Shown here one piece after another: positions 21,813 through 42,973 of a stretch of DNA of 64,000 nucleotides. Below the pieces are notes generated by a model. That model was not told where the DNA came from and searched no databases. It worked only from the letters and a program-made list of their open reading frames with translations. Positions within the stretch are counted from its first letter, which is position 1, and each line of letters starts with the position of its first letter. The translations under genes and the position numbers were made by a program. The stretch is from positions 62,001 through 126,000 of the forward strand of contig JAHLWZ010000803.1 of assembly GCA_020536535.1 (NCBI GenBank), written 5' to 3'. The DNA is from Pelomyxa schiedti (Eukaryota > Protista > Evosea).

Positions 21813-22215
21813 AAACTATCAGTGCACTGTCAATAAGTTGTAAATTGTGAAACCTGTTTTATTGCATTTGGCTCTAAATTCGCAAGTAAGGAGAAAAACA
21901 AAAAGAAAAGGCAAGAAGAAGAAAGAAATAGACCCTAAAAACAACGAGGAGTCACCAGCTCAAGGTGAGGAAAATGCACCCCTCAAGGAACTCCTAAATG
22001 TTGGCGTTGTTAAAGGTAAAGTGGTGAATAGCCAGTTGTGGGCAGAGCACCCATTCAGAAACCTGTCATATCAAAACAACGTGTTCAGACCCACAGGATA
22101 AACGGCCAGCCAAGCTTAGGACAATCACCAGTGATTAGCCGAAACTTCCTTTCAATGAACTTCTTTCACCTGTTCTGGCTTCACAAAAAAAAAACATCGT
22201 GGCGGGGGGGTTAAG

Positions 22216-23102
22216 ATGAGGACTAGCAGCGCGCTGGTGGTGGGTTTGTTGGCGATAGTGGTTTGGTGCGCGGAGGCACGTGTGATTGGACAGGGCGCAG
22301 ACTGTTCGTGGGTTTATGGCAACAACACCGATGGCAGTGCCTACACAGATGGCCAACCCATTGATGTACTGCCCCCACTTTCCCTCCCCCACCTCTCTTT
22401 GTTTCGGTTTTTGTTCAATTTACGTTAAACTTTCGTTTTGTTGTGGTAACAAACTTTTTTTACAGGTTTGTGCAGAAAATGAGGCAGCGGAACTGTGGTA
22501 TTGGGATTCTGGAAGCACAACCATTATTATTATCCCTGGTGAAACTCTGGACAACGTGCCAGCCCACAACATTTCCGAATTTGCCAAGATAAGCTGCAAG
22601 CTTGCTGTTGATGCGTTTTACTCCATGGATCCAACTCCGGCAGTAATTGTTGTCAGTGGAGGCAACGTGCACCCTGAAGGAACTCCATACAACGAGGCTT
22701 GCACTTAATACACCTTTTTTTTTACTATAGTAATTCTCACACAGGCATATGAAATGAGAAGATATTTGGTGGAAACCCTGGGTTTCCCTATCGACAAGGT
22801 TGTACTGGAGTGTTACGCACGAAATTCTGTAACAAATTTGAGAAACGTGGGCCGCTTCATGCTGGTTTTAAATATGCAGTTAAATTTGAATCCTCTCACC
22901 TCCCAAACAGACCTACAGCTCCACAATCTCCTATGTCATTTGCGACAGCCCTCAGTCTCTCACATTCATCAACACAGCCAAGAGGGAGGAAGAGGAACTG
23001 GGCTACAGTGTGGGTGAAATGAAACGTGTGGATGCTACTACTTTCACTTTTGTGCCATCCCCTGATGTAATGACACCCAGTGGTGATTCCAGGGATCCTT
23101 GA
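22216..23102 (+). CDS. Secreted DUF218/YdcF-like protein, multi-exon
   Basis: Signal peptide MRTSSALVVGLLAIVVWCAEA; motifs IIIIPG, IVVSGGNVHP, NEAYEMRRYL and LECYARNSVTNLRN. Confidence 0.8.
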
Positions 23103-23206: not shown

Positions 23207-26010
23207 TCAAAGCCTCAGTCTCTTTCTTGGCTGTGAACTGCAAAACAGACTGTTAGCAGAATAATAAGGGAAGGAGATGACACGCACGGGTCGTCTTCGT
23301 TTTCATTTTCTCCATCTTCGTGTGCACGCAATCTCATTGAGGATGTTGTTGGGTCAGTTATGGCAGCTTTTTTTTAAAAAAGAAAAAGTTAGTCCCTTGT
23401 GCGTGTTGTATGAGTAGAACTAGAATTTGGTTACCTTCCATGGAATTTTCTGTTTGAGCCATGACTTTTATCAACTAAGATATGACATGCACATGTTGGT
23501 TAGGTCCGCGGTTAATGGGGAATGGGATAATTACATCATTGATTTTCTTCATGTCTTTGTCCAGCTTGGCCTCCTTCTGTTTCCTTGTTTTCCTTCCATC
23601 TGCCATTTTTACACCAAACTGAAATGCAGCTCTGGAGGGATGAGTGAGTGGTTGGTGCAAGAACAGATAGTAACGAACCTGGGCATTGCCTCTCTTGTCT
23701 GATTATACTTTTCCCAGCCTTCTTCTGTGTCAAAATCCCATCTTTTCAATCTGTTTTTGCCCTTTGGTCCCTGATCCATTTTTGAGACATCTTCATCTTC
23801 ATCACTGTCTGCTCCAAATGACGTGGACTCAAAGGCTCTGAAAACAATTAGGGTGGAAGGGAACGTGAAAGGCTTGCACACCCTGGATAGCATTCAAAAT
23901 AAGGGTCCAATTTCGTTGGATCCTGAGGAGAAAAAGAAAGTTCGGAAATTAATTACAATAGCTGAAGGGGAATTTACATACCGGCTTTGAAGGTGGCTGA
24001 TTGTGATGTGATGCCTGTGGTGGTGCCCCACCAGGGCTAGCTTTAGTTGTTTGCTTGGGTGTGTTCAAGTCTTTCTGGGGAGATGATGGTGGAGGAGAAG
24101 TCTGGGGCAAGTTTGGAGTTGGTAGTAAGGCGGTGGGCTTCGTTCTTTCAGCAGTTGGTGGGTGACTGCCAGAGCTCTGATTGGCCGGGTCTGGATTCTT
24201 ATTCTGGCTTTGGTTCTGATTCGGGTTCTGGCTCTCTAAATCTAGGGACATCACACGTGCTTGAGCCAAGATTAAAGAAGCTGTTGCTTTTGGATCAGTT
24301 GGTGCTGGTGCTTCCTCTGTGCTTCTCTGTGAAAATTAGAGATTTTACTTTCTCAGTAATGAAATTGTTACCTCAAAATAGGACTTAGGAGGCGCAACAG
24401 GTTGTGTTGGTGTACTTGTAGTCGAGGTTGGTGCTTTGGAACTGTCTTCTTTGTCTTTGGTGGAGAATATGTAATCTCCAACATCTGGGAATATACTATT
24501 TCAAAAGGTGAGAACTTGTTAAGACTGCAAGGTGATTAACCTATCCTCATTATCAAGAGGGGCTGAGATTGTGGGAGTTGTGACGGTGGTTGGAGGTGGT
24601 TTCTGTTAAGGCTGTAAGTTGTTATATGGAAATGAGGGAAAATACTGTGGGAGTCATGGTAGGAGATTCCTTATCTTTTCTTCTTCTTCTACCCTTGGGT
24701 GCAACACGGAGACTTGTCATAACTTTCAAAATTTTGTCCATTATGTTGTTGTCAATCCTACCAGTCATCATTGCCTTTTTTTGCTATAAGATTTTTCCCA
24801 TTCACTAGTAATGCGAACTTCATCCTGTGCCGCAGTTGTCTTGGAGCTTATAATAGTTGTTGGCATATCGGGAGCCCTCTCATCTACAGGGAAATGGTAA
24901 ACCATCCTCCCACCAATGAAAAAGTCTAAAGTGTGAGATTGGTCATGCTGGTCTTGTTGGTGTGCTTGTATGGTAGCAGCAGTGGCAACAGAAGTATTAT
25001 CACTGGTATTGAATGATGTGATGAGAGGTGCTGAAAAAAGTATTTTATATACACGCCGAGCCATGGGAGAGTGCATGGCAATGGCTGGTGTTGGTCTGTG
25101 ACAGGAGTGAGGGGAAAAAGGCAACCAGGGATAAAAGTACTCGGGTAAAGGTTTTCTCTGTTCAGGAGTGTCCTTTTCTCTTTCTTCCATTTCCTTTCTT
25201 TTCTAAGAGAAGTTAGATTTAACACCAGAACTTAGACTTTGGAACCTTCTGGAGCAAAACAAAATCCAAACCTTTCACAAGATGTGTGTGAGCTTCATCA
25301 CCACCAAGGTATTTTGATTGTTCTACAGTCAACTTCTTCACGCTGACCTCTGAGACTCTATTTGCAGTGGTAGTAAAGAGGCAGAACAGTGCATAATGTA
25401 CCCTGGTGCGGGCGGGTTCATTGTTGATAAAATCTGGGTGTCACCAACAAAATCAGGATTGTCATTTTGACGTCTTTCAGCTGCCCGGTCTCTATCAATG
25501 AATGAGTGGCTGTTCATTTATGTACTGAGGTGCCAATAAATTGCAAAGGGGCGAAACAAAAAGAAGATGGTAACGAAAATGAGCTACAAACCTGTAACCT
25601 GCCGATTTTTTCTCTGAGTTCTGTGCCCTCCTACAACATTCATTCACATTAGAGTTCTTGGACAATTTTAAAAAAAAAAAAAAAAAGTGCCCCGCCTTCC
25701 CAACACAAACACAAACACTCACGTACTGCTTCTTCCTCATTTCGCTCTTTACCCTCTTTCTGTAGGCGTCGTCGTCTTCCTCCTGCTGCTGCGCCCCGCC
25801 CTCGCCTCCTCCTCCCCCCTCCCCCGTGGCCGCCCCGCCGCCGCCGCCGCCTCCTCCCCCGCGCCCCCCTGGCTTGGGGCCCCCGCGGCCCCGCGACGGC
25901 GTCGCCCTGGTGGCCCCGCCCCCTCCCCCCGGCGTGGTCCCCACCGCCGGAGTCGACCGCGGCGTCATCATGAGCACCCGGAAGTCCTGGTTCGACAGCC
26001 CCCGCGACAT
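23207..26010 (-). CDS. IK: Protein RED (IK) spliceosomal factor, multi-exon
   Basis: N-terminal LSNQDFRVLMMTPR; C-terminal KRWDFDTEEGWEKYNQTREAMP|AAFQFGVKMADGRKTRK. Confidence 0.9.
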
Positions 26011-26370
26011 GGCCTCTTCGTTATTGCGATTTTTTTTTTTTTTAGTGATGAGAGTGTCGCCACGAAAGTTCGAGGATTTAGTTGGCTTAGTGTTGTGCCA
26101 CTCTCCTGAAGAAACGAGCGATTAACAAAACCTTTGTTGGGCTGAGGGACAGGCTAAAAGGAAGGGTGGATGACTTCGATTGTATGGTTTTATTTGTTGT
26201 ACTTAGTACTGGGCCTAAGTTGTACATTTCACCACGGCATAATGGTGACGTTCAGTTCAAAACAAAAAAAAGCGCCCAATCTGCCAAAACCAAGCCTTCT
26301 TATACCTGAAATTTAAGAGTGTAAGTGACTAGTAGGTACTAAGTAGCATATCAAACCTTGGTGGCAGAAA

Positions 26371-27354
26371 TTAAACCATCCCTTCCGGTGTCTTTGCTAC
26401 CATCTCAATCTCTGCAGCGGGCCCGGCCGGAGTAGTTGCCCTAGCCTCTACAGCCATTGGGGGCCGGGCGTCAGTCGGGAACTTACAGTTGTAAAAGTGC
26501 CAGAGCAGCGGTGTGACATAGCATGCCACCACAACATCCAGTGTGTAGTGGCGCCTTGTTAGCAGGATGCACACTATTTGAAACAAGATGAGCGGGTATA
26601 GGGCGTAATTCAGTATCTCAATGGCGCGCTTGCTCATACTGGGTGCCCCATTAGCGGTGGGCTGTATAAAAACAGGCACTGAGTAGTACTGGAACGTGAA
26701 GATGAAGGTGATGAGGGTGAACATGTGTCCACTAAAGACAAGGTCACCACAGTTCGAATTTGGAGAGACTGCCAGCCGCGTGAACACGGCCAACAGTGTC
26801 TTTGGCTGATATTCTCCTGCTGCATAACTGCGGCATATTGGAGTAACACCAGGCAGTGAGGTGGCTACATATGTGAAAAAGCGTAGAGTCTGTCCCAGCA
26901 GAAACACAGTACCCATTCGTTCCATTATGTTGTATATGTAAGGCTGTACTTTGGTCAATATTGTCTCCCCCGCCCTCATATTAAAATATCGACTCCAATT
27001 GTATTTAATAGCCATTAAGGTACAGTAGGGAAACCAGTATACCTTCGTGGTTGACAGAGTATTGCCAATGAGAGTGTAGAGGCACAGGATAAGAATAAGT
27101 AAACCAATAATCTTGATCGGAAGATCAGCGAGAGTGCGCGCTGCCACGGAGTTCTCGAGATTTGGTAGGAGCGAGAACCCCCTATCAGACAAGACCGGTC
27201 TGCCCACCTCGTGGAAGTAAAAAACGAGGTTTCTCGCCACCATGCTGATGCAGTATACGAACCAGAAGGTCACCAAAACAAGGTATTTCCAGTGCGTTCT
27301 CAAGAGGTACCACTCCCCTTTTAATCTCTCCAGCAAATAGTCTGTCCAACGCAT
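26371..27354 (-). CDS. Sphingomyelin-synthase family / inositol-phosphorylceramide synthase-like protein (intronless)
   Basis: 327-aa ORF with multiple TM helices and motifs LRFFTY..TSLPG, CGDLVFSGH and RRHYTLDVVVA. Confidence 0.88.
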   Translation of the reverse strand: MRWTDYLLERLKGEWYLLRTHWKYLVLVTFWFVYCISMVARNLVFYFHEVGRPVLSDRGFSLLPNLENSVAARTLADLPIKIIGLLILILCLYTLIGNTLSTTKVYWFPYCTLMAIKYNWSRYFNMRAGETILTKVQPYIYNIMERMGTVFLLGQTLRFFTYVATSLPGVTPICRSYAAGEYQPKTLLAVFTRLAVSPNSNCGDLVFSGHMFTLITFIFTFQYYSVPVFIQPTANGAPSMSKRAIEILNYALYPLILFQIVCILLTRRHYTLDVVVACYVTPLLWHFYNCKFPTDARPPMAVEARATTPAGPAAEIEMVAKTPEGMV

Positions 27355-37674: not shown

Positions 37675-39220
37675 ATGGATGATTCCGAAACAGTGCCACC
37701 GGACGTTGCGGACAAGTACGAGTTTGAGCGCCGATACAAGTGCTCCTACCCAGTGTGGCCAGTATACTACCATCATTGTCTTTTTGCACACGCCTAGGGC
37801 TAACATGGTGTCTTCTGGTTGTGTAAAAAACACAAAACCAAAGGTGAGGGAGAGGGCCACCTCGAGGTTCTGTGTTGTCAAGCGTGTGTATAAGTTGTTT
37901 GGTGACAAAGACACCACGAGAGACGCGTACAAGGAACTGCGCACTTTTATCCATTTGGGCTCTCATGAAAACATTGCTGGTCTCATTGAATACATCCTTG
38001 TAATTCAACCACCCAGAAATCATATAGCCACACTCTGAACACTCCACTACAAGCCTCGGAATTTCCCGGACTTGTTCATCGTGTATGAATCCCTGCCGGT
38101 TAACCTTTGCTCGGTAATTCGAGAGTGCGTACTTGAACCTATACATAAACAGGTCTGAGCTTGGTCCAATGTCTTGAAATTATTTCCCTTATATCTGGCA
38201 GTATATTATCTATCAGCTCTTCAAAGCTTTGTTGTGGATTCACTCTGCTGGGTTGATCCACAAGTTCGTAGACTCCCTTTTCTATGTTTTTAAAGAGAAA
38301 ATTCAAGTAAGGTCAAGTCCGATAACGTAGTGATAGACGAAACATGTACCATTAAGGTTGTTACCTCCCTTCCAAATTAGCACCGACCTTTTTCAGCTGT
38401 GCTCCTTTGAGAATATTGATGGTGTTGGCATCCCAAGACCCTCACCGTATGGTAGTTATTTTTTTTCTCCAAAAAGAAAACTTAAAGTAGCAGAACCTCT
38501 TGCTAGATGGTTCGCTGCCCCTGAATTGCTTCTAGAGTGCTCACATGTGACAAGCGGTATTGATGTATGGGGTGTTGGGTGAGCTTTGGTAGATTTGAAC
38601 TTAACATGTCACTCTATATCAAATCTCTAAAATGAAACTCTAAAAAGCTGCATCCTTGGAGGAATGCTAAGGGGAGAGCCCATGTTCCAAGGAACTACCA
38701 CACTAAACACCCTCGAAATAATTCTCTCTTTCACTGGTCCACCAACTCAAGAAGCTCTTAGTGTACTGGAGGGCAAATTAGGAAAGTACCTCACATTAGA
38801 AGGAGTATTCCTGATGGAATTTTCTCACTACAGACAGTATTCTTGAAGCACTACATCCGCCCGTAACAGATTGGACATCCCGATTCCCTAAAGCCACAAG
38901 CGACGCCCTTGACCTTCTCCATTGTATGTTAGATTTAAACCCTCTCAAGAGACCCTCTTCATTTGAGGTAACTAATTAATTATCAATTCCCAAATACCCG
39001 CAAATAGAGACTAATACAAATATAATAACTACTAATATTAATAGCTGAACTCACGTCAACAAAGGCTCTGGCACACCCATACTTGTCAGAGTTCTCAGAC
39101 CCTGCCTCTGAGCCAATTCACTCCCTGCAAGTGCACCTTCTTTACTCCACAACAGTTTCCTTGGAGAACCCAGAACAGTTCGGGGCGGCTCTTCAACCCG
39201 AGACAAATCAGTCGCTGTAA
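37675..39220 (+). CDS. MAPK (ERK7/MAPK15-like) probable pseudokinase, multi-exon
   Basis: Kinase fold motifs VVKRV, YKEL, HENI, YIIYQLFKALLWIHSAGLIH, RWFAAPELLL, IDVWGVG, ALAHPYL; HRD and DFG are degenerate. Confidence 0.85.
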
Positions 39221-39230
39221 AAAAAAACAA

Positions 39231-40492
39231 ATGTCAAAAGGTTTGCCTTTCACCTTGCTCGTGCGAGAGCGGGGCCAAGTGGCCCCACCAACACAACAGG
39301 GGCTGTGGGCCCGAGGCCAATTTCTTGCCCTCAGCGCCGCTGCGTTCGTGCCACGGTGCGGCGCCCGCAGCCCCGCTCGGTGCCTCCCACCAGCACTCGC
39401 GGCGTACGAGATCGGCCGCCCCTGGGTGGTCCCGAGGGACCCCGCCGCGGCTGTGGTGTTAAGGCTGCAGTTCCATCGTCTCCCCGGCGTCGACGACTGC
39501 TTCGTGTACTACGACTGTTCTCTGCATATGGACGGAAAGCTTGGATTCGACCGGTGCTGGGTCGTGACTTTTTCGCATACCGGGGGTGTTCTTGCAATGG
39601 AGCAGTGGCGACACAGAACAAGATGCCTCGGCTGGATCTCCCCAAACTTGGCCGTGGCACGTGATAACACAAACTCGGCCATGGCGGTCTTTGACTGCCG
39701 TAACGCTGTGGAGCCAGCAATTATGTGCCAGCTACCTGAAATGGACACAATGGCTTCGTTTGCAACAACAAGTGGGCAATACATCTCTATCAGGCTGGAT
39801 TTTTCCTTCTTATTCTGCCACAAAATGGTGCGCTATCTGCTGCGTCTGGCGGTGGAGACCCAGCCATTGCCTCCAAAACACAAGGAGTAGCAGTGCCGTC
39901 CCGCATTGACGGGGGCTTATGCCGGTCTCTGGGGGTGAACTTCACTGAAGGTGGAGATGACGAGGCCATACTGCGAACTACCTCAGAAAACGTACTCTGG
40001 CTTGTTGACATTCGTGAAACTTATTCCAGTGGTACCTTGTGTATCAAAGAACGCCGACGCGGCTTCCGGAGACTTGCTTACAAGGTTTTCTGCTCCGAGC
40101 TTCACAAGATGATTGCGCCAATGTACCAGCCACCGTATAAACAACCCAGCTTCGAGCTGAGAGCCATCGAACCCGATAGACGTAAACACAAGATTCTAAG
40201 GCAGTGCAGGTCAGAACCACACAAGGTCGACACACACCACTTTGTGGAGGTCACACACCGAAACCACAGGCTCGAGGTGTTTTCCACGGATGACATGGAA
40301 CACCCCTGCAACGTGATTCACAACACAACAAGGATCAGTTTCGTCTGCGGTGGTGGACTCATTGCGTTCCTGGACGAGAATGACAGGATCGACTTGGTTG
40401 ATGCTGTGTCTGGCACTTTGGTTCTGAGCTGGCCTGTGCCTTCCGATTTCGAGCAGGAGACATTCACCATGTGGGTTGTGGGTGCCCATTGA
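39231..40492 (+). pseudogene. Tandem orphan-family paralogue A (frameshifted near 39745)
   Basis: N-terminus matches paralogue B; GFVCNNKW and the C-terminal block lie in a different frame after CQLPEMDT. Confidence 0.8.
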
Positions 40493-40527
40493 CACATTCG
40501 AGAAAAAAAACAATCAAAGCTAATCAA

Positions 40528-41706
40528 ATGGTGTCCGCCAGTTGGGAACAGGCAGTCGAGGGCCTGCTCCGCCCCGAGCGGGGCCAAGTGGCCCCACCAA
40601 CACAACAGGGGCTGTGGGCCCGAGACCAATTTCTTGCCCTCAGCGCCGCTGCGTTCGTGCCACGGTGCGGCGCCCGCAGCCCCGCTCGGTGCCTCCCACC
40701 AGCACTCGCGGCGGACGAGATCGGCCGCCCCTGGGTGGTCCCGAGGGACCCCGCCGCGGCTGTAGTTCTGCGTCTCAGATGCCGGGACGGCAGGGTGAAG
40801 GCCGCCACCCGAAACAACGTTTTCTGGGTTGTCACATTTTCGGGAACTGGGGGTGTTGTCGGTGTGAAGACCTGGGAGTGCCCACTTGGCAATCACGTGG
40901 GGTGGCTATCGGCGGAGTTTGCTGTGATTGAAGCCAGAGTACCCTGCGTTTCTGCGCTTCTGTTTCTCGTTGGAACTACGATCATGGTGTGCCAATTACC
41001 TTGGATGGACACCTATGGACAAGGGGGTTTTGTCCGCAACAACAAGTGGGCACTCAATCTATCTTTCACTGGAATCCAGCTCACAATTCTGGACTTAACT
41101 GGCCCACTCCTTTGCTACAAACAATGGGCCGTATTGAACATGTCGGCTACGGATCCGCCAAGTTGGGTAGACATTGTGGAGAGGGGAGACGATGAGGCAG
41201 CTCTTGGAGCGAACCGTGCAAGGGAAATCTGGATAATTGATATTCCCGAGAGTTACTCCACCCGCAGATTGTGCATCAAACAACGCCTTACTGGCTTTGG
41301 ATCTACCACAAAAGGCAGGATTCTCACCTCTGACAACCACCAAGTGATAGTTCCCGTCCACCAGAGAGACTTGTGGACCCTCAGACCCACGGCAGACACC
41401 GTCTTGAGGAAGTGCAGGTCGGAACCACACAAGGTCGACACACACCACTTTGTGGAGGTCACACACCGAAACCACAGGCTCGAGGTGTTCTCCACGGGAG
41501 ACATGGAACACCCCTGCAACGTGATTCACAACACAACAAGGATCAGTTTCGTCTGCGGTGGTGGACTCATTGCGTTCCTGGACGAGAATGACAGGATCGA
41601 CTTGGTTGATGCTCTGTCTGGCACTTTGATCTTGACCTTGCTTGTGCCCTCGGACTTTGTTGAGGATTCGTTCGCCATGTGGGTTGTTGGTGCACACAAG
41701 AGATGA
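40528..41706 (+). CDS. Tandem orphan-family paralogue B (intronless, ~392 aa)
   Basis: ARDQFLALSAAAFVPRCGARSP...NNKW...CGGGLIAF...DALSGTL. Confidence 0.85.
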   Translation: MVSASWEQAVEGLLRPERGQVAPPTQQGLWARDQFLALSAAAFVPRCGARSPARCLPPALAADEIGRPWVVPRDPAAAVVLRLRCRDGRVKAATRNNVFWVVTFSGTGGVVGVKTWECPLGNHVGWLSAEFAVIEARVPCVSALLFLVGTTIMVCQLPWMDTYGQGGFVRNNKWALNLSFTGIQLTILDLTGPLLCYKQWAVLNMSATDPPSWVDIVERGDDEAALGANRAREIWIIDIPESYSTRRLCIKQRLTGFGSTTKGRILTSDNHQVIVPVHQRDLWTLRPTADTVLRKCRSEPHKVDTHHFVEVTHRNHRLEVFSTGDMEHPCNVIHNTTRISFVCGGGLIAFLDENDRIDLVDALSGTLILTLLVPSDFVEDSFAMWVVGAHKR

Positions 41707-41740
41707 AGATAGGGGAACAAAAAAAACAAGAAAATTGCGA

Positions 41741-42973
41741 ATGAGTTTTGTCTCCGAGCTGATCGAAACGGCAACCACGTTCGCAAGCACTTTCGTGGTC
41801 AGCCAACGAGGCAAAGTACAGCCGCCATCTTTCGCTCTGCGGGCGCGGGACCAATTTCTCGCCCTAGGCGCCGCCGTGTACTCCGCCCGGTGCGGCGCAC
41901 GCAGCCCAGGTCGCTGCCTCGCCCCCGCCCTCCTTGCCGCGGAAATCGGGCGCCGGTGGGTGCTCTCCAGGCCGCCCGCGGCCGCCGTGGTACTGAGGCT
42001 GCGCTGCGAGACGATTTGTACGTCGGGGGCCGGCTGGGTGTCGTACGACCGGGAGGTGTTCTGGGTGGTCACGTTCTCTGGAACCGGCGGCGTTATCGAC
42101 GTCGAGCCGTGGGGGGCCTCGTCCGGGACGTGCCTGGGGTGGCTCACGGCGAATCTGGCGGTGGTTCTGGTGGGCCACATGACAAGTCCCGGCGCCATGG
42201 GGTTCCCGATGGTTATGGACTGCAGCAGCCCCGTCGGCGGGTCGGTGGCGGCGTGCCGATTGCCTTGGATATGCTCGACGAGACAGGGCTTCGTTTGCAA
42301 CAACAAGTGGGCACTCCGGACGTCGGACGATGAGCTGTGCTTGTCGATTCTGGACTTGACTACTGTTTCCTCTGGAAAATGCACTAAACTGCCAGTTGTG
42401 CATGCAGGCCGCACACAATTTGTTACTTGGGTGGACTTTGTGGGGAGGGGAGGTGATGAAGCAGCTCTCGGAGTGCCCTGGGAAATCTGGATCATTGACA
42501 TCCGTGAGAGTTACTCCACCGGCAAATTGTGCGTCAAAGAATGCCTTACTGGTTTTGGAACCATCAGAGGAAGGATTCTCACCTCTGACAGCCACCAAAT
42601 GATAGTTCCTGTGACCCATATAGCAGGGAGATCACGAAAAGCCACATGGACACTTAATCCCACGCCACATTCGGTCGTGAGGAAGTGCAGGTCAGAGCCA
42701 CACAAGGTCGACACACACCACTTTGTGGAGGTCACACACCGAAACCACAGGCTCGAGGTGTTCTCCACGGGTGACATGGAACACCCCTGCAACGTGATTC
42801 ACAACACAACGAGGATCAGTTTCGTCTGCGGCGGTGGACTCATTGCGTTCCTGGAAGAGAATGACAGGATCGACTTGGTTGATGCTCTGTCTGGCACTTT
42901 GGTCTTGACCTTGCCTGTGCCCTCCAATTTCAATGAGGAGACATTCACCATGTGGGTTGTGGGTGCTCAGTGA
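41741..42973 (+). CDS. Tandem orphan-family paralogue C (intronless, ~410 aa)
   Basis: ARDQFLALGAAVYSARCGARSP...CNNKW...CGGGLIAF...DALSGTL. Confidence 0.85.
   Translation: MSFVSELIETATTFASTFVVSQRGKVQPPSFALRARDQFLALGAAVYSARCGARSPGRCLAPALLAAEIGRRWVLSRPPAAAVVLRLRCETICTSGAGWVSYDREVFWVVTFSGTGGVIDVEPWGASSGTCLGWLTANLAVVLVGHMTSPGAMGFPMVMDCSSPVGGSVAACRLPWICSTRQGFVCNNKWALRTSDDELCLSILDLTTVSSGKCTKLPVVHAGRTQFVTWVDFVGRGGDEAALGVPWEIWIIDIRESYSTGKLCVKECLTGFGTIRGRILTSDSHQMIVPVTHIAGRSRKATWTLNPTPHSVVRKCRSEPHKVDTHHFVEVTHRNHRLEVFSTGDMEHPCNVIHNTTRISFVCGGGLIAFLEENDRIDLVDALSGTLVLTLPVPSNFNEETFTMWVVGAQ

Follow-up and report, generated by a model that had tools for sequence, protein, structure and literature searches.

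A window of 64,000 nucleotides (nt) from the archamoeba Pelomyxa schiedti, comprising positions 62001-126000 of the forward strand of contig C803 (JAHLWZ010000803.1) in an assembly of 52.4 Mb in 5337 contigs, contains an array of three paralogous genes whose segments have different histories. The paralogs, termed A, B, and C, lie head to tail on the plus strand between positions 39231 and 42973 according to the list of open reading frames (ORFs); all positions are given in the window unless another contig is named (Table 1). Each copy carries conserved arms around a strongly diverged core, and the mosaic was very probably produced by recent short-tract gene conversion between old tandem duplicates that encode a predicted beta-propeller protein with an N-terminal helical module.

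The mosaic is observed directly in the nucleotide sequence. A 5' segment (N-block) differs between A and B at only 2 of 188 nt, and a 3' segment of 218 nt (C-block) is common to all three copies, with 5 mismatches between A and B, 6 between B and C, and 7 between A and C; the block coordinates and the first three of these counts had been given in an earlier note made from the sequence alone and were found to be exact. In sliding windows, A and B were 98-100% identical over the 5' block, where C reached 63-75%, and for about 600 nt thereafter the copies were roughly equidistant (36-70%, with many indels). B then resembles C over a stretch that represents either an older exchange or the trace of a sister relationship between the two, before all three copies converge at 95-100% in the 3' block. 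The final 69 nt displayed 11 mismatches between A and C, 15 between B and C, and 20 between A and B. The relatedness switches described in the earlier note were therefore recovered for A with B at the 5' end and B with C in the middle, and the affinity of A with C in the tail holds as well, although it is the weakest part of the observation. The outer edges of the N-block are sharp, with matches per 20 nt dropping from 19-20 to 3-9, and the same drop was identified at the 5' edges of the C-block in the A-B and A-C comparisons, while identity decays more gradually at its 3' edge. The resulting tract lengths were 188 nt for the N-block and 218-282 nt for the C-block, and no core segment of high identity between copies was found in the comparison of A, B, and C.

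Synonymous divergence (dS) revealed that these segments differ far more than a common duplication history allows. Nei-Gojobori distances were calculated per segment from a protein-guided codon alignment of B, C, A (whose two reading frames were joined solely for this purpose), and five paralogs that lie on other contigs. In the C-block, dS was 0.055 (A-B), 0.089 (A-C), and 0.112 (B-C), and in the N-block it was 0.115 for A-B compared to 1.09 for A-C and 1.15 for B-C. The first core segment (core1) was saturated, with 1.26-1.92 for the three array pairs, and the second (core2) separated B-C (0.38) from A-B (1.69) and A-C (1.94). Synonymous divergence thus varies more than 10-fold between segments, with 0.055-0.115 in the near-identical blocks against 1.26-1.92 in core1, and the contrast in synonymous differences was significant both for the C-block versus core1 (Fisher P 2e-9 to 2e-14) and for the N-block (Fisher P 1e-7). 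A and B agree at up to 23 variable sites in a row, compared to a maximum of 11 in 10,000 column permutations; this triplet permutation test is insensitive to the C-block, where all three copies agree, and dS together with the outgroup paralogs was used there instead. Maximum likelihood trees of the segments conflict, grouping A with B in the N-block (96%) and B with C in core2 (99%) and uniting A, B, and C in one clade in the C-block (100%, branch lengths 0.01-0.02). The more than 10-fold differences in dS and the incongruent trees confirmed that a single duplication history cannot explain the patchwork, and they support the recurrent segmental exchange that the earlier note had proposed. Two of the outcomes by which that note would have been refuted, congruent segment trees and equal synonymous divergence of blocks and core, were not observed.

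The exchanged segments correspond to parts of the predicted protein. An AlphaFold2 model of copy B, based on a 25-sequence family alignment (predicted template modelling score 0.81), displayed three helices at residues 31-70 followed by seven four-stranded blades, and the N-terminal strand 73-83 probably closes the propeller ring. A Foldseek search with the model retrieved propellers at E about 1e-9. VIA Z values of 13-15 over 250-315 residues were obtained for methylamine/aromatic amine dehydrogenase heavy chains, PROPPINs, and WD40 proteins, and Atlas TM values of 0.52-0.58 for bacterial YVTN/YncE propellers. The model is consistent with a three-helix module at the N-terminus joined to a seven-bladed beta-propeller, in which the N-block maps to the helical module, the C-block to blades 5-6, and the variable core to blades 1-4.

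Gene conversion would account for this arrangement as follows. The copies are probably old duplicates, since their synonymous sites are saturated in blades 1-4. A and B would have exchanged some 190 nt that encode the helical module, and in all three copies about 220-280 nt of blades 5-6 would have been homogenised; B and C may also have exchanged part of blade 4 at an earlier time, and A and C a short piece at the 3' end. The whole pattern calls for no more than four or five exchanges, of which two or three are solid. Purifying selection would keep the two segments alike throughout the family, leaving only there enough homology for heteroduplex formation, and the diverged, indel-rich core would terminate the tracts. 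The placement of the tracts would then be passive, because they coincide with the segments that are most conserved family-wide: of the 28 columns of the family alignment that are invariant or nearly so, 14 fall in the C-block and 6 in the N-block. Both the recombination mechanism and this homology-limited placement are what we infer from the observed block positions and divergence.

Public sequencing data reproduced the junctions of the array. The assembly combines MiSeq, HiSeq, and Nanopore reads from the amplified DNA of seven cells and was made with SPAdes at k up to 121 (PMC8887013). Four public runs contain the stretch, all from one sample of one study. Logan contigs of these runs break inside the repeated blocks, as is expected of de Bruijn graphs at repeats. 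Mismatch-free contigs in all four runs cover each core (39425-40243, 40734-41451, and 41599-42727) and extend 30-45 nt into the adjoining blocks, such that every core-to-block junction was reproduced in four runs, and the last of these contigs crosses the spacer between B and C. The depth of the C-block contigs was about two to three times that of the cores in four of four runs, that of the N-block contigs about 1.5 times where they were recovered, and the copy-specific mismatches inside the blocks were reproducible across runs. Alternative joints of arm and core were not found in the contigs of the four runs, which drop rare variants and derive from a single sample. Single-base differences were present in some of the runs and not in others (41984 G>A, 43223 G>T, and 43239 G>A) and may stem from alleles that differ among nuclei or cells, or from the loss of an allele in whole-genome amplification.

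The near-identical arms are a local feature. A BLAST-type search of the whole genome with each block, a check proposed in the earlier note, found near-identical copies only in this array, and the next-best matches in the 52-Mb genome were 69-83% identical for the C-block and 72-79% for the N-block. Further family arrays on C1026, C1077, C178, C498, C1111, and the whole 27-kb contig C1032 were compared, those besides C1032 being judged from the loci returned by a six-frame genome search. Neighbouring copies in these arrays align only in their N- and C-terminal parts (67-85%), and no near-identical blocks between neighbours were detected in that alignment for any of them. Among 28 intact genes of the family, the median synonymous p-distance between genes on the same contig was 0.41 in the N segment, 0.58 in the core, and 0.50 in the C segment, and 0.61, 0.70, and 0.72, respectively, between genes on different contigs. 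A second clear case was identified on C1032, where the genes at 21917-23086 and 25870-27018 differ less in the C segment (synonymous p-distance 0.04) than in the core (0.18). Arm conversion therefore appears from these distances to recur sporadically in the arrays of the family and not to be one of its constant properties. C1032 consists almost wholly of such an array: its roughly 13 copies and fragments point in both directions, and several are broken.

Several other origins of the mosaic were weighed. The arms could be alike with no copying at all, through very strong purifying selection, whether on protein, DNA, or RNA, that leaves the core free, as they are the most conserved segments family-wide and also the only parts in which paralogs of other contigs align. 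This explanation has hardly any probability, given that C-block dS is 0.05-0.11 within the array compared to 0.54-1.84 between array members and paralogs elsewhere, and that the N-block is near-identical for A and B only and not for C. Protein-level selection can neither erase synonymous differences nor do so for one pair only, and the near-identity is therefore best attributed to copying; copy A, which is frameshifted and retains perfect arms, leads to the same conclusion, because selection on each copy would not have kept them so. Unequal crossing-over, in which reciprocal exchanges between misaligned array members create hybrid genes, would find a natural substrate in co-oriented tandem units of about 1.2-1.3 kb with conserved spacers, and one crossover in the C-block could give the B-C sister region followed by a common 3' end. 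As the source of the whole mosaic it is nevertheless improbable: both blocks are internal with diverged sequence on either side, which a single crossover cannot produce and for which several nested double crossovers would be required, so that short-tract conversion fits better. An artefact is highly unlikely as well, whether from chimeric amplification or from SPAdes repeat resolution making mosaics or collapsing the blocks. The amplified single-cell template, a k-mer length below that of the blocks (PMC8887013), and the breaks of the Logan contigs at the blocks would permit it, but independent mismatch-free contigs in four runs span the cores into the flanking blocks and cross the B-C spacer, the block contigs have the raised depth that true repeats predict, and the copy-specific mismatches recur. 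Some points do weigh against gene conversion or narrow what can be claimed for it. The DNA was amplified from single cells (PMC8887013), and with short-read contigs that break in the blocks the linkage of core and arm is only probable; the estimate of exchange events comes from one genome, in which either copy of a pair may have been the donor; the B-C similarity in core2 could be true sisterhood plus rate variation, and core1 also groups B with C, weakly (67% in the maximum likelihood tree); the tail affinity of A and C rests on 69 nt; and codon bias of the GC-rich N-module somewhat lowers synonymous distance even between unlinked paralogs (median 0.61 versus 0.70 in the core).

The earlier note had further read the array as a cassette system underlying a diversified recognition repertoire. 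In such a programmed system, conserved arms would anchor the shuffling of cores among copies, or silent donors such as the probable pseudogene A would feed expressed copies. The constant arms that frame a variable core rich in indels, the pseudogene with intact arms inside the array, a huge family confined to one lineage, and, as a weak lead, nearest language-model neighbours among rapidly evolving ubiquitin-ligase substrate receptors all fit this proposal. It is nonetheless very improbable, because the recently exchanged segments are the arms and no core is highly identical between copies, near-identical arms are absent in most other arrays (C1026, C1077, C178, C498, and C1111), the contigs of the four runs, which come from one sample and drop rare variants, hold no alternative joints, and the protein N-terminus has no hydrophobic leader by inspection and does not indicate a surface role. 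A start codon and an A8CAA motif upstream of it are moreover present in every copy, which argues against one expression site plus silent donors. With arms that are local and coincide with conserved modules, the cassette claim was not supported, and the mosaic is attributed to ordinary interlocus conversion between tandem duplicates instead of a dedicated diversity-generating system. A milder version is unlikely; in it the family is a germline recognition repertoire whose constant module plugs hundreds of variable propellers into a common machine, such as a ubiquitin-ligase adaptor not yet recognised, and whose arms anchor the reassortment of blades 1-4 among array members on an evolutionary time scale. 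Pelomyxa lives with several prokaryotic endosymbionts, and if such a repertoire existed, it would be to Amoebozoa what the F-box expansions are to nematodes and plants, with a new adaptor motif as its basis.

The earlier note had counted three gene copies, and three are present, of which copy A is not intact. A deletion of 10 nt near 39750 shifts its reading frame, and frame 0 meets a stop at 39888-39890 past the deletion; copy A is on this basis a probable pseudogene. The Logan contig 39425-40243, which covers the frameshift, is identical in four runs, and the frameshift is therefore not an error of this assembly alone. The copies are separated by spacers of only 35 nt (A-B) and 34 nt (B-C), which leave almost no space for separate promoters and terminators. 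The 11-mer A8CAA directly abuts the start codon of A and lies 0-17 nt upstream of the starts across the array, with 4 matches in the window compared to 0.49 expected. The motif was not found ahead of the family genes of other contigs, and a role as family-wide promoter was rejected because it is confined to this array. The array is situated upstream of two features on the opposite strand, a Ras-family GTPase gene and a C-terminal exon of VPS13. The guanine plus cytosine (GC) content of the stretch is 55-57% compared to about 43% in its flanks, a contrast that arises because uninterrupted coding sequence sits among AT-rich introns. A foreign origin or GC-biased conversion was rejected as its cause, because the median GC at third codon positions (GC3) of the family (0.66) is within the range of the neighbouring Ras-family exon (GC 0.56, GC3 0.78), and the elevated GC is ordinary exon composition.

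Table 1. Features of the A/B/C array in the P. schiedti window, with the evidence for each (HMM, hidden Markov model).
Feature	Position in window	Strand	Evidence
Copy A, whole unit, frameshifted	39231-40492	+	ORF list
Copy A 5' part, frame 0: N-terminal helical module and first blades (predicted)	39231-39749	+	ORF list; family HMM positions 6-157; codon alignment
Copy A frameshift point, 10 nt fewer than B	39750-39751	+	Sequence; DNA alignment; two frames matched separately
Copy A 3' part, frame 2: blades 2-7 (predicted), open until stop at 40490-40492	39752-40492	+	ORF list; HMM; codon alignment
Copy B, intact, intronless, 392 amino acids	40528-41706	+	ORF list; genome search; AlphaFold2 model
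Copy C, intact, intronless, 410 amino acids	41741-42973	+	ORF list; genome search
N-block of A, putative conversion tract common to B, encoding the N-terminal helical module	39267-39454	+	Mismatch count; dS
N-block of B, residues 17-79	40576-40763	+	Sliding window; dS; genome search
Region of B 80-88% identical to C (42412-42625), A 46-58%	about 41150-41370	+	Sliding window; dS; tree
C-block of A	40203-40420	+	Mismatch counts; dS
C-block of B, residues 295-367, blades 5-6 (predicted)	41411-41628	+	Mismatch counts; dS; model; genome search
C-block of C	42684-42901	+	6 mismatches to B; dS
A8CAA 11-mer upstream of the start codons of A, B, and C	39220-39230, 40503-40513, 41719-41729	+	Motif count
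Intron inferred from KAH3757403.1, 124 nt, probable annotation artefact	41679-41802	+	Splice coordinates derived from sequence

The public annotation of the array joins two of its genes. GenBank entry KAH3757403.1 (Pelo_10831, 773 amino acids) is a fusion of B and C, matching residues 1-384 of B at 383 of 384 positions and then being identical to C from residue 22. The intron inferred from this entry deletes the last codons and stop of B, the spacer, and the first 20 codons of C, and it is probably an artefact of annotation. An exact-product look-up for B returned no match. The fusion of B to C in the database model also accounts for the absence of B itself from a length-limited word search. 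Many further database entries of 700-1300 amino acids hold two to five family stretches and represent fused tandem copies, such that fused models look common in this annotation and these multi-propeller models distort counts of the family. Some of the fused entries bear the names of neighbouring genes (TRAF5, adenylate cyclase, and U2AF).

The genes belong to a family for which the only database relatives are "hypothetical proteins" of P. schiedti. No Pfam match was found in the 25 family members scanned, even at E up to 10, and none of the WD40, Kelch, YVTN, and NHL repeat families of Pfam was significant. A profile search of 1.84 billion representative proteins retrieved 383 at E <= 1e-3 and 203 at E <= 1e-10, all 20 of the 20 matches looked up being from P. 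schiedti, and a six-frame search of the genome identified at least 132 family matches. The description as an orphan gene in the earlier note consequently holds in that the family is confined to Pelomyxa, but not for a single gene, since there are hundreds of members within that genome. Genes of the family consist of one continuous ORF of about 1.1-1.3 kb each, although the P. schiedti genome averages 7.43 introns per gene (PMC8887013). From these searches the family appears to be Pelomyxa-specific, undescribed, and unusually large, and with 383 representative clusters against 19,876 predicted proteins it ranks among the largest lineage-specific families of Pelomyxa. Contigs C1002 (989-4112) and C481 (17985-21108) are 100% identical over at least 1.9 kb with two genes, and the family-bearing contig pairs C1473/C2402, C1005/C1913, and C2483/C721 are 92-98% identical over whole genes; such pairs are probably redundant or allelic and inflate the copy counts. 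The N-terminal module was also identified in proteins of about 495 and 364 amino acids (L042:252-1736, L046:252-1733, and L042:1989-3080, all on the minus strand, with L042 corresponding to C1002 989-4112), where it is 65-68% identical to B over about 45 residues and is joined to a body that matches the family profile weakly. Its presence on more divergent bodies suggests that the module defines a wider superfamily.

The family was compared with ubiquitin-ligase components. A genome-wide scan with the F-box model PF12937 found at least 148 places, none of them in this family. Alignment of the N-module profile (31 sequences) to 21 Pelomyxa F-boxes with hhalign gave P 0.13 over 12 columns, and a profile search of the PDB sequences with the N-module returned no match. 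The N-module modelled alone (moderate predicted local distance difference test score of 72) had no PDB structure match at E <= 0.001 in Foldseek, which is a weak negative. An F-box identity was rejected on the empty Pfam, PF12937, hhalign, PDB profile, and Foldseek searches. A predicted complex with Skp1 of Physarum, used as stand-in for the Pelomyxa protein, scored 0.02, for which the tool gave no verdict either way. Pelomyxa itself has at least five Skp1-like loci (among them on C76, C911, and C832), each interrupted by several introns. In a language-model feature search, DCAF17 (0.90) and FBXW12 (0.87) came nearest, with low recognition value; both are substrate receptors of cullin ligases. 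At E <= 1 the DCAF17 model PF15802 matched no part of the genome, and the Pfam scans did not return it either; the DCAF17/FBXW12 identity was dropped on that ground and retained as an architectural analogy only. By this analogy, and with low confidence, the protein might act as an adaptor in the cytosol, its constant helical module docking to a common partner and its variable blades recognising diverse targets.

The array provides a clean, quantifiable example of what is probably gene conversion limited by homology in an archamoeba; we know of no data on ectopic recombination from the archamoebae. Because arms and core have different histories, whole-gene alignments are unfit for building trees of the paralogs of this family.

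Comparison with known systems places the array closest to ordinary interlocus conversion. Ubiquitin-ligase substrate receptors of the F-box/WD40 type, such as the mammalian FBXW12-type clusters, the F-box proteins of nematodes and plants, and DCAF proteins pair a constant module for adaptor binding with a recognition domain that evolves fast. Similar to them, the family has a predicted N-terminal helical module followed by a propeller, and it shares with the expanded families of such receptors the hundreds of lineage-specific copies in tandem clusters with conserved ends and a variable middle. Unlike these receptors, it carries no F-box, WD40, or DCAF17 sequence signature and its N-module has no PDB structural match, and the resemblance, drawn by analogy, would be one of architecture only. 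Systems of cassette variation, such as the mosaics of trypanosome variant surface glycoproteins, Neisseria pilE/pilS, Borrelia vlsE, and the pseudo-V genes of chicken immunoglobulin, share with the array segmental conversion that includes a pseudogene and conserved flanks around variable segments. The array differs from them by the lack of a single expression site, by converted segments that are conserved and not variable, by a product that looks cytosolic, and by contigs from four runs of one sample in which no cell-to-cell variation was seen.

Interlocus conversion and concerted evolution in tandem multigene families have been reviewed (PMC3966226) and the process itself is well known, including in Caenorhabditis paralogs such as the F-box-related fog-2/ftr-1 pair (PMC3966223). 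Reported lengths of surviving conversion tracts cluster at 50-200 nt and extend up to kilobases, and conversion is biased to close, co-oriented paralogs (PMC3966223). The array follows this pattern with short internal tracts of about 190-280 nt, exchanges among close and co-oriented neighbours, and homogenised segments that adjoin diverged ones and yield conflicting segment trees. New here is the conversion mosaic demonstrated and quantified in this array. In contrast to known cases, the organism and the gene family are new, one participant is frameshifted, and the tracts match two structural modules of the predicted protein, the helical module and blades 5-6.

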